A DNA stretch of 64,000 nucleotides, taken from NCBI RefSeq assembly GCF_001447785.1, contig NW_015167061.1, positions 193,889 to 257,888 of the forward strand, written 5' to 3'. The translations under genes and the position numbers were made by a program. Of this stretch, positions 44,101 to 47,909 are shown piece after piece; position 1 is the first letter of the stretch; every line of letters starts with the position of its first letter. The notes under the pieces are model-generated. The model was not told the DNA's origin and made no database searches. It worked only from the letters and a program-made list of their open reading frames with translations. Source of the DNA: Gekko japonicus. Lineage: Eukaryota.

Positions 44101-47100
44101 CAACCATCGACATCCATATGAATCAGATCAACTTTGAGCGCGAATGGTACAAGTTCCTCCTGGACTACATCGCGCCCATCACAGAGAAGCTGTACCCCGG
44201 GTACTACACCAAAGTAAGGCCCGTTTCAAAACCACTTACTTTATTAGCAATACTTATAAATAACAACAACAGCAAAATTATCATGGTATTTGGAAGACAT
44301 GAACGGAGCTGTATTTCGACAATCAAAGGAGAGCAAGCGATAACAGTGCAGTAACAAGCGGTGTTCTGTAGATGGCATAATTAAATCAGTAGGCAAGGAT
44401 GTGATAGCATCACACCTGAATGATTAATTGAAGTATTTAAATATTTAAGGCTGCTTAAATGCTACTAGGAGCTGCGGTGGCTCAAGTGGTTAAGACGCTG
44501 AACTGCAGGCTGTGGAAGGTCGGTAGTTCAGCAGTTCGAGACCTGAGTTGCCGCATGACGGAGTGAGCTCCCGTCTCTAGTTCCAGCTCCTGCCAACCTA
44601 GCAGTTCAAAAGCAAGAAATTGCAAGTAGATAAATAGGTACCACTTCGGTGGGAAGGTAACAGCGTTCCGTGCACCTCGGTGTTTAGTCATGCCGGCCAC
44701 ATGACCACGGAAACGTCTGCGGACAGTGCTGGCTCTTCGGCTTTGAAACGGAGATGAGCACTGGCTTGACTGGCTTTCGAGCAAGGGAACCTTTACCTTT
44801 ACCTAAATGCTACTTTAAGTATTTCAGGCTACTTAAATACATCAGAATGGAGCTGTATTTCAGTGGTCTCTGAGGTATTTGCTATGTAGAAGTTTCTGTG
44901 GATTCAGAATGAATTCTGAAGTTAGTTGTATAAAATGGATCGTTTGTAATCTTAAGCTTAGAAATCAGGAGGTCCCAGACAGTGTTACCTCTAAGCTGAG
45001 ATAGTGTGAGCTAGCTCACAGTTTTTTTAAAGTATTTTATTAGTTTATATATAGAAAGGGAAAAGAAAGTGTGCGTGTGTATATATATAAGTCCAGTTTA
45101 ACATTCTGCATGCAAATCTTCTCATAAAAGCTTCTCAGCTATTATAATCTTTCTTGCTATTCTTCATTTAATCTTAGTTTCTCTATACTTGTGTTTTAAC
45201 CAGTCATAAAACGCCCTCCATTGTCCAGCTAGCTCACAATTTTTTAGCCTCCGGCTCACACGTTTTTGCCTTCGCTCAGGAAGGAGGGCTCCAGAGCAAA
45301 CTGACTTATGCACCAGCCAAATCGCTCGCTCACAACTTGAATGCCAGGAGCTCACAAAGTACAATTTTTGCTCACAAGACTCCACAACTTAAGAGGGAGC
45401 ATTTGTCCCAGATTTAAAGAAACCATTTAAAAAAAAATCCAAGCTCCTCTATTATCTTCCAAAAGGCTTGGTAATGCTTCGCTTTCCCTCCGCTGTCCTC
45501 CTGGCTGCCTCTCAAGCGTCGCGGTGCCACGTAGGGTAAGGTAAGATTCATGGTGTTCTCTCTTCCCCCGCAGACCCAGTTCGAGCAGCAGTTTGTATCC
45601 CCCAAGTGGTCCCAGTATCAGAAGTGGATCTAGGGCTTAGAGTTTCGTTGCATTCTTTTTTGTTGTTTCCTTCTACTTTTTATGCCTCATTTCGTTCTGC
45701 TTTCTCCCCAATTGTCAGAAACTCGAACCTCTTCTTCTCTTCTCCAATTTTTATCTTCCTCCTCACTTCTCAATATTCGAAGACACAATTACATGAATAT
45801 GGTTTACCGCGATACAATAAGTCAAAAATTTCTAAAGCACAATAATGACTGAGCTATTAACTAAGACAGCTGTTTATGCTAGTTTTCCTAAAAAAAAATT
45901 TTTTTTCCTCTTTCTTTCTTTTTGGAAAAATCGATTGTTAAAATAGTTACTTACTATGTTTGGATTTGGTTACCATCTATGTACTATTGCAAAATTCAAC
46001 TTGTGTATTCAGTTATCATTGTTATGGATTTGCTACTGTTATCAATAAAAATTTTTTTTTAAAAAAGTGTCACGGTGCCATGTAGGGTAAGGTAAGATTC
46101 ATGGTGTTCTCTCTTCCCCCGCAGACCCAGTTCGAGCTGGCCTTTGTGGTTCGGTATAAACCTGACGAGCAGCCATCGCTGATGCCGCACCATGACGCAT
46201 CCACTTTCACCATCAACATTGCCCTGAACCGTGTAACGAAGTAAGTCCCTGCAAGGATCTTTCTGCCGGGGGAACCTTCTGACGAGATGGGCAGCTCCGT
46301 GGCTGGGAGAGAAGAGGCAGCCTGGGTGTAGGTTTGGGGGGAGGTGTAGGCCCTGTACCCCTCTTGCCAGCTTCCGATTGACCCTTCAGGAAAAGGCACT
46401 TGCTGACCAGTGTTCCATCTAAGCTGAGTTACCGTGAGCCAGCTCGCAGTTTTTTAGCCTCCGGCTCACACCTTTTTGTCTCAGCTCAGAAAGGAGGGCT
46501 CCAGTGTTCCCTCTAAACTGAGTTAGTGTGAGCCGACTCACAGTTTTTTTAGCCTCTGGCTCACACCTTTTTGTCTTAGCTCAGGAAGGCAGGCTCCAGT
46601 GTTCCCTCTAAGCTCAGTTAGTGTGAGCTGGCTTGCAGTTTTTTAGCCTCTGGCTCACACCTTTTTGTCTTAGCTCAGGAAGGATGGAGCTCTGGAGCAG
46701 ACTAATTGATGCAGGAGCCAAATCGCTGGCTCACAACTTTAATGCCAGGAGTAGCTCACAAAGTGGGATTCTTGCTCACAAGACTCCGCAGCTTAGAGGG
46801 AGCATTGCTGCTGACTGTGGTTGAAGACCCAGAAGTTCAAAATTTTGGCAACCTCCCCAATGAATTTCCGGGAAAACAGATAGGCAGGGGGTTGTTTTTG
46901 ACATCTGTGTGTGTGTGTTCGATGCCGTCGAGTGACTTCTGACTGACAGCGGCCCTATGAATTAATAGAACAAAGTCTGAGTCCAGTGGCACCTTTAAGA
47001 CCAACAAAGTTTTATTCTGGGCATAAGCTTTCATGTGCATGCACACTTCTTCAGATATCCGAAGAATCTGAAGAAGGGTGCGTGCCCACAAAAGCTTCTA

Positions 47101-47909
47101 CCCAGAATTAAACTTTGTTGGTCTTAAAGGTGCTGCTGGACTCAGACTTTGTTCAGTGGCTTCAGACCAACACGGCGACCCCACTTGGACCTATGAGTTA
47201 ATGGTGTCCAAAACGTCCTGTCCTTTAATAGCCTGGCTCAGGTCTTGCAAACTGCAGGCCGTGGCTTCCTTGATTGGGTCCATCCATCTCACGTTGGGTC
47301 TTCTTCTTTTCCTGCTGCCTTCGACTTTTCCTAGCATTATTGTCTTTTCCTATGAGCCTTGTCTTCTCACATTGTGACCGGTGTTCCCTCAAAGCTGAGT
47401 GAGTGTGAGCTGGCTCACAGTTTTTGGCCTCCAGCTCACACATTTTTGTCTTAGCTCAGGCAGGATGGGGCTCCAGAGCAAGCTAATTTATGCAGTAGCC
47501 CAATGGCTCACTCACGACTTTAATGCTAGTAGCTCACAAAGTAGAATTTTTGCTCACAAGACTCCACAGCTTAGAGGTAGCATTGTGACCAAAGTACAAT
47601 AGCCTCAGTTTGGTCATTTTAGTTTCTAGGGAGAGTTCAGGCTTGATTTACCCACACACAGAGGGACAAACTTTGAACCCTTTCCTCTCCGTTTTCTCCC
47701 TCAAAGCCAGGTCAGCATACTCAAGGCTGGTTCTTGCTTTCTTCACTCTGCAGGGCGGAGGCTGCCACTTCCTGCGGTACAACTGTTCCATCAGAGCGCC
47801 CCGGAAAGGGTGGACCCTCATGCACCCGGGTCGCCTGACCCATTACCACGAAGGCCTCCCCACCACCAAAGGGACTCGTTACATTGCTGTGTCCTTTCTT
47901 GATCCGTAG
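20142..47909 (+). CDS. PLOD1: Procollagen-lysine,2-oxoglutarate 5-dioxygenase 1 (lysyl hydroxylase 1); 19 exons: 20142-20220, 26721-26812, 27425-27561, 28416-28579, 30323-30435, 30782-30845, 33530-33627, 35096-35197, 35452-35583, 35823-35944, 37318-37422, 38459-38584, 41330-41471, 42207-42320, 43166-43231, 43551-43655, 44067-44213, 46125-46240, 47754-47909; apparent frameshift in exon 18
   Basis: Signal peptide [14 protein letters not shown]; [16 protein letters not shown]; [20 protein letters not shown]; [15 protein letters not shown]; [29 protein letters not shown]-stop. All introns are GT-AG and phases agree except after exon 18. The total of 2180 nt is not a multiple of 3. Confidence 0.97.
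20905..21488 (+). mobile_element. 5'-truncated LINE (RTE-X-like) ORF2 C-terminus with (TAT)n tail
   Basis: ORF 20952..21344 [13 protein letters not shown]...[16 protein letters not shown] (Cys/His knuckle), short UTR, microsatellite tail. Confidence 0.7.
27689..27770. repeat. (TTTCC)n microsatellite running into an assembly gap
   Basis: Direct reading. Confidence 0.95.
29634..30033. mobile_element. hAT non-autonomous element
   Basis: TIR TAGGGATGTGCA/TGCACACCCCTA; perfect 8-bp TSD GTCACAGC. Confidence 0.9.
33954..34520. mobile_element. Penelope-like pLTR insertion with ~140-bp inverted duplication
   Basis: 33954-34093 is the reverse complement of 34299-34440; 15-bp TSD GAAAGCCACAGATAT; decayed hammerhead core CTGAGGA-AGGCCC..GGGCC-AAAAC. 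Confidence 0.8.
39598..40020 (+). mobile_element. CR1-type LINE 3' end with short internal duplication
   Basis: TGGAATTCACTGCCACAGGAGGTG (WNSLPQEV); tail TTCTCTTATGTTCTTA. Confidence 0.7.
45029..45226 (-). mobile_element. L1-like 3' fragment nested in a hAT MITE
   Basis: [19 protein letters not shown]-stop, AATAAA + A tail on the minus strand; flanking duplication AGCTAGCTCACA(G/A)TTTTT. Confidence 0.7.
45587..46064 (+). mobile_element. Retro-insertion (L1-like 3' end) flanked by a 73-bp duplication containing the PLOD1 exon 18 acceptor
   Basis: AT-rich 3' part ends AATAAA (46044-46049)...AAAAAA; flanks 45514-45586 and 46065-46137 match at 70/73. Confidence 0.7.
46125..46240 (+). CDS. PLOD1: PLOD1 exon 18 (HxD iron-binding motif), 116 nt, 10 nt shorter than the expected 126
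   Basis: [37 protein letters not shown], then ACGAA|GTAAGT where ...GVDYE| is expected. Confidence 0.85.
46966..47195. mobile_element. Penelope-derived short element, inverted pair, with minimal hammerhead core (related copies ~19487, 33230, 36532, 40713, 59300-59590)
   Basis: GTGGCACCTTTAAGACCAAC/GTTGGTCTTAAAGGTGC arms; minus strand CTGAAGA-A-GTGTGCATGCACAT-GAAAGCTT. Confidence 0.75.

Follow-up and report, generated by a model that had tools for sequence, protein, structure and literature searches.

In people, loss-of-function mutations of the lysyl hydroxylase gene PLOD1, whose product is LH1, are described as causing kyphoscoliotic Ehlers-Danlos syndrome, a recessive condition with healthy carriers (PMC7073314). 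In warmblood horses, fragile foal syndrome goes with the PLOD1 change c.2032G>A, p.Gly678Arg (PMC7766603). For the paralogous enzyme LH3, Thr672 and Phe673 lie at the dimer interface, Cys691 positions 2-oxoglutarate, and truncations without His719 abolish lysine hydroxylation (PMC6082870). The stretch of DNA analysed here, called the window, comprises 64,000 nt of Gekko japonicus (assembly GCF_001447785.1, contig NW_015167061.1, positions 193,889 to 257,888 of the forward strand). It carries on its + strand a lysyl hydroxylase gene that sequence comparison identifies as the PLOD1 orthologue, and exon 18 of this gene is ten bases short. The evidence below indicates that the gap is probably confined to the reference sequence and is not the normal state of PLOD1 in G. 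japonicus.

The coding region runs through 19 exons (20142..47909, + strand), from an ATG at 20142 to a TAG stop at 47907-47909, as aligned to the RefSeq protein XP_015268038.1. Exon 17 (44067..44213, + strand) closes in phase 0 at 44213 with ...YTK and is followed by GTAAGG. Exon 18 (46125..46240, + strand; acceptor cag at 46122-46124) opens in phase 0 and is followed by the canonical donor of intron 18, a perfect consensus GTAAGT at 46241..46246 (+ strand). The first-pass annotation had given its length as 116 nt, against 126 nt in the family, and this was borne out by the spacing in LH3, by four other geckos and by the bulk of the family. When compared with the solved human LH3 (6fxk_A), the alignment of exon 18 ended at residue 658 and that of exon 19 began at residue 665. 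Where six residues, or 18 nt, are expected between the two, the window has 8 nt, a deficit of 10 nt. A spacing of six residues is also seen in the mimivirus L230 chain. Among 167 collected family proteins, each of at least 400 aa, 158 have a loop of seven residues between ALN and GGGC, and nearly all such loops end in D-[YF]-[EQ]; in place of such a loop the window has V and 5 nt. Comparison with related species, which had been suggested as a check, revealed the full-length loop in four other geckos, with N[HR]VGIDYE standing directly before GGGC.

Placed against these gecko orthologues (...VGIDYE, then GGGC), the missing 10 nt would fall between 46235 and 46236 (+ strand). They would comprise the codons for Gly-Ile-Asp and the first base of Tyr, as the orthologous gecko proteins indicate at the level of codons only. 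The remaining ACGAA would be the end of the Tyr-Glu codons, and the exact breakpoint slides by 1-2 bases. The letters GTAAGTCCCT of the deletion allele stand where an intact exon has the Gly-Ile-Asp-Tyr codons. Continued past its end, exon 18 reads ...NRV, then T, K and a stop. An exact look-up of the 47-aa open reading frame of the deletion allele in a protein collection gave no match, a result that is uninformative.

Because the junction between exons 17 and 18 is in phase 0 and exon 18 has 116 nt, exon 19 is left out of frame. The canonical coding part of exon 19 (47754..47909, + strand) is intact in its own frame, reading GGGCHF...THYHEG...SFLDP-stop. Canonical splicing onto it gave the shifted reading that had been claimed, ending at a premature TGA at 47836..47838 (+ strand). 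The claim that the distal iron-binding His and the 2-oxoglutarate-binding Arg are lost also held; in LH3 numbering these are His719 (47847-47849) and Arg729 (47877-47879). Exon 19 further encodes Cys691, the C of GGGC, and Leu715, while exon 18 encodes Tyr656, the HxD ligands His667 (46188-46190) and Asp669 (46194-46196), Thr672 and Phe673. Under canonical splicing of the assembly, the HxD...H iron triad and the Arg do not share one frame. They do so only by way of an upstream acceptor at 47711, or in a 126-nt form of exon 18 to which the X4 contig described below points.

If the allele is real, canonical splicing would yield a protein of about 702 aa, whose two glycosyltransferase-like domains would stay intact, as would the hydroxylase fold over its first half. 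As Cys691, Leu715, His719 and Arg729 would be lost, we propose that such a product would have no hydroxylase activity. The premature stop lies within the last exon, so nonsense-mediated decay would not be expected. Since loss of PLOD1 behaves as a recessive trait in both people and horses, a carrier would be healthy and the allele silent.

The RefSeq protein (740 aa, G. japonicus) matches the window at 100% exon identity in all residues but one split codon, the signal peptide exon at 20142 included. It carries the same short exon 18, uses the donor at 46241 and an acceptor AG at 47709-47710, and begins exon 19 at 47711, which adds an upstream extension of 43 nt (47711..47753, + strand) to that exon. 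Its sequence runs ...ALNRVTK and resumes with GGGCHF after 14 residues that translate the final 42 nt of intron 18. Ten bases lost and 43 added make +33 nt, so that the frame is restored with 11 extra residues (740 as compared with 729). The route swaps GIDYE for a 16-residue insert and produces a loop of 18 residues ending in TLQ, as against 7 in the family. A loop of 18 residues occurs in XP_015268038.1 alone among the 167 proteins, and the model bears no low-quality flag. The 18-residue loop of the model, which lies next to the catalytic pocket, is very likely spurious. A weak alternative donor in frame, CGT/GTAACG (46233..46238, + strand), would leave an exon of 108 nt from which all six loop residues are lost. 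Either in-frame splice rescue would also remodel a sensitive spot. A hypothetical GC donor, CCT/GCAAGG (46251..46256, + strand), would give an exon of 126 nt (46125-46250) that keeps an in-frame TAA at 46242-46244.

Transcript and read evidence came from four of 24 listed runs: RNA reads (X21), DNA reads (X22), contigs (X4) and contigs of a related organism (X18). They were aligned to positions 43500-48500 at a likeness of 85, chosen to keep reads with a 10-nt insertion. The X4 contigs bear the same species label and are spliced, and are therefore derived from RNA. One of them, record 10 (1574 nt, depth 225.1, minus strand), matches the window at 44066-44213 with its positions 1427-1574 and at 47754-48500 with its positions 554-1300. 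Its first piece stops at the end of exon 17 and its second begins exactly at the canonical start of exon 19. The letters between the two number 126, the family length and not 116. From this length only, we infer an intact exon 18. The depth of X4 in the bin 46005-46171 was 65.9, as compared with 63.4 expected if record 10 covers 46125-46171, and the middle part of the contig is therefore exon 18. In the bin 46172-46338 the depth was 124.4, above both the 93.0 that an exon ending at 46240 would give and the 106.5 of one ending at 46250; another contig contributes there. In the bin 47675-47841 the depth of 118.6 equals 225.1 x 88/167, indicating that no X4 contig lies on 47711-47753 and that the acceptor of the RefSeq model is unused in X4. 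The depth of X21 was not raised in this bin either.

Two of the splice routes could be rejected for X4. The donor at 46233 would leave 108 letters between exons 17 and 19 and the acceptor at 47711 would leave 159, where the contig has 126; for the second route, 47711-47753 is also uncovered. The first-pass annotation had held that reads or complementary DNA with the full GVDYE-coding sequence would refute the lesion. The X4 contig comes close to providing this, on the evidence of its length of 126 letters. A protein search with a 106-aa open stretch over exon 19 returned 94 matches, none of them from Gekko, a blank that is uninformative. A search with Paroedura PLOD1 found no full-length Logan-derived G. 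japonicus protein. Another X4 contig (record 9, 43627-44095) covers intron 16 together with adjoining sequence of exons 16 and 17, at a depth of 28 as compared with 225 for the spliced contig, and represents either a retained intron or a pre-mRNA signal.

The animals behind these runs differ from the reference. Of 747 positions in exon 19 plus the 3' untranslated region, 14 (about 1.9%) differ between the window and both X4 and X21; exon 17 adds 2 differences in 148 positions. The alternative letter was present in every read at the listed X4 and X21 differences, and the few X22 DNA reads agree. The three runs, from three studies under the same species label, thus share a haplotype about 1.9% from that of the window and are homozygous at the listed sites. 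Contigs of a related organism (organism B) were about 8% diverged. At the coding level, the window and the X4/X21 haplotype differ at five sites, each a synonymous change in the third codon position. This indicates that, for most of the time since the two haplotypes parted, purifying selection has acted on PLOD1 in both, and the lesion is therefore either of very recent origin or not real. A different population, or a cryptic lineage, may be the source of the reference animal.

Exon 18 lies on a unique island of 835 nt between blocks of a very high-copy, short interspersed nuclear element (SINE)-like repeat in introns 17 and 18 (44335-45503 and 46339-47674; motif ...GTGTTCCCTCTAAGCTGAGTTAGTGTGAGC...); positions 46407-46733 hold a tandem sub-repeat of 95 nt. 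The blocks attracted hundreds of thousands of reads, the DNA pile-up reaching 10^3-10^4 times the unique depth, and the RNA runs are also rich in this element. A unique island between high-copy SINEs is a setting prone to assembly trouble, in which short-read assemblies are stitched. The window contains seven N gaps of uneven size (13106-13156, 16259-16859, 21489-21636, 27771-28126, 40323-40383, 49449-49785 and 61226-61261), two of them inside PLOD1 introns, which is typical of a short-read scaffold assembly. For the published G. japonicus assembly, SOAPdenovo and SSPACE were applied to Illumina reads from a single adult male (PMC4673495); to judge from sequence identity, the window belongs to that draft. 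A direct duplication of 83 nt (45514-45596 and 46065-46147, 92% identical) includes the exon 18 acceptor and the first 23 nt of the exon, and flanks an insert of about 470 nt with an A/T-rich tail. The upstream copy of the exon start would read TQFE, 16 unrelated residues and a stop, and it is hardly used, with an X4 depth of 5.8 as compared with 225 on exons and an X21 depth of 0.

Restriction of the ten-base gap to the reference sequence is the explanation that we consider probable. On this explanation, the normal allele would join a 126-nt exon 18 to the canonical exon 19 and so encode the enzyme at its usual 729 aa, in which a single frame covers both the HxD...H iron triad and the Arg that binds 2-oxoglutarate. 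The 126-letter spacing in X4, the lack of X4 coverage over the RefSeq extension, the seven-residue loop of the other geckos and of nearly all the family, the absence of a second lesion in 19 exons and the purely synonymous differences all favour it, and of what the first-pass annotation said about the origin of the lesion it is the caveat, that the lesion is 'recent, heterozygous or an assembly error', that survives. Two forms can be distinguished. The sequenced male may really have carried the deletion as a private allele, most likely in the heterozygous state, which is a tentative proposal; that the gap arose as an error of draft assembly or gap filling is possible, and we hold this more tentatively. 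De Bruijn assembly rarely creates false 10-nt deletions in unique sequence. This counts against a pure assembly error, and for this reason we lean slightly towards a private allele that was picked by the assembler. We infer carrier status, as we do an escape of the shifted transcript from nonsense-mediated decay.

Several points weigh against a gap confined to the reference. The ten letters themselves are unseen, the 126-letter evidence being one of length alone, and the same number of letters could be obtained from the GC donor at 46251. The tables of indels, joints and loose ends from the 43500-48500 alignment were filled by SINE repeats. Over the exon 18 site, the sampled X22 DNA reads had a depth of 0.11 and gave no cover. 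The label shared by X4, X21 and X22 may cover another population or even a sibling species; if so, these runs would say little about the lineage of the reference animal. Finally, a null allele of an important gene is uncommon in a wild adult.

Fixation of the deletion in the reference animal's lineage, with or without rescue by splicing, is in all unlikely. We regard as no less unlikely the specific case of a reference male from a cryptic Gekko lineage about 2% diverged, in which the deletion is fixed and PLOD1 is either hydroxylase-dead or rescued as a 740-aa protein whose loop next to the 2-oxoglutarate pocket is remodelled. Rescue through the acceptor at 47711 would give an enzyme of 740 aa that keeps His719 and Arg729 and bears the 18-residue loop. 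XP_015268038.1 takes exactly this route with a 100% match to the window, the acceptor has a good pyrimidine tract, and the reference haplotype, about 1.9% from the RNA animals, could be a separate lineage. Such a fixed and rescued deletion is nevertheless quite improbable, in view of the X4 spacing of 126 rather than 159, the lack of X4 coverage over 47711-47753 and the X21 depth, which does not rise in the bin 47675-47841. Moreover, the loop that would be replaced is conserved, with D-[YF]-[EQ] in nearly all of the 167 proteins, and stands directly before Cys691 (PMC6082870), and the horse Gly678Arg lies only two residues further on (PMC7766603). An open stretch of 14 codons, as used by this route, arises at random with a chance of about 0.5.

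Fixation with outright loss of the LH1 hydroxylase, PLOD2 and PLOD3 partly compensating and helical hydroxylysine in skin being lower, is, if anything, slightly more improbable. The X4 transcript spacing is normal, the lesion is the sole one in 19 exons and the haplotypes differ by synonymous changes only, which is hard to reconcile with such a loss even though the lesion is present in the assembly and the RefSeq model alike and LH3 truncations without His719 lose lysyl hydroxylase activity (PMC6082870). PLOD1 loss is, besides, a disease state in people and horses, and skin shedding rests on preformed dermal planes of weakness (PMC9292694). The least probable of these explanations is a species-wide deletion in which the 126 letters of X4 derive from the GC donor at 46251, with an in-frame TAA after ...NRVTK. 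The segment 46125-46250 is also exactly 126 nt and the letters of the contig are unread, but CCT/GCAAGG fits the donor consensus at only about four positions. Use of this donor is very unlikely because a perfect GTAAGT stands 10 nt upstream and all 18 PLOD1 introns use GT; the synonymous-only divergence likewise argues for an intact frame.

The identity of the gene as PLOD1, proposed in the first-pass annotation, was upheld by the best named matches and by the gene downstream. PLOD1 exons were compared singly, and full-length comparisons relied on database orthologues. Full-length similarity was highest to proteins named PLOD1, not PLOD2 or PLOD3, and PLOD2-like and PLOD3-like representatives scored lower against the window, exon by exon, than gecko PLOD1s. 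Searches with exon 19 and word-based protein searches returned PLOD1 of many vertebrates. By tblastn, the proteins closest to the window formed a gecko cluster (Paroedura, Heteronotia, Eublepharis, Euleptes and two Gekko entries), with the four other gecko PLOD1s at 82-89%. Exon alignment and GT-AG borders at all 19 exons agree with the claim that the other 18 exons are intact, and no lesion was found outside exon 18. A unitary pseudogene would be marked by several disabling lesions and relaxed constraint; here there is one lesion in 19 exons, with GT-AG borders throughout, and the coding differences from the other haplotype, a small sample of five, are synonymous without exception. Downstream of PLOD1, on the same strand, lie exons of a mitofusin-like (dynamin-type GTPase) gene (57682-62930, + strand). 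They align at 75-98% identity with the C-terminal part of a hamster gene model in which PLOD1 and mitofusin are fused; a mitofusin gene likewise stands beside mammalian PLOD1.

The first-pass annotation had also proposed that the lesion, if fixed in a gecko lineage, might be a basis for tear-away skin. This idea was not supported, because the X4 contig has 126 letters in this interval and skin loss has another explanation in preformed planes. A literature search for PLOD1 and gecko found nothing relevant. G. japonicus is not known as one of the skin-shedding geckos. Regional skin loss has been described for Geckolepis, where it goes back to preformed weak planes by which the dermis is partly divided (PMC9292694), and not to a general weakness of collagen.

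As a trait, then, the gap probably does not matter, the species most likely making a normal LH1. XP_015268038.1 needs to be checked before any use in structure work, in alignments or in scans for selection. A real allele would make the reference animal a carrier of a PLOD1 null, an ordinary finding as in people and horses. Only if the deletion were fixed in a lineage, which is unlikely, would it provide a test of how far lizards tolerate LH1 loss and a natural reptile model of loss or rescue.

The RefSeq model resembles the frame-preserving models that annotation pipelines build over draft indels, in that it likewise keeps the frame with a nearby AG. The expected biochemistry of the frameshifted gecko product is that of the LH3 (PLOD3) truncations without His719, in which the hydroxylase is lost and the glycosyltransferase kept (PMC6082870). 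Those truncations, however, concern a paralogue of gecko LH1. LH1 itself is not known for meaningful glycosyltransferase activity. The horse Gly678Arg affects the middle Gly of GGGC (the motif starts at 677 in the 727-aa mammalian PLOD1), two residues past the loop that is cut in the gecko. It is a missense change with pathology proven in homozygotes, whereas the gecko lesion is a 10-nt deletion with no proven carrier. A further likeness is with the human alleles of kyphoscoliotic Ehlers-Danlos syndrome, which affect the same gene in a like manner, the C-terminal portion of the hydroxylase domain being removed by a frameshift; unlike these, the gecko lesion is seen in one reference sequence only and may be an assembly error.

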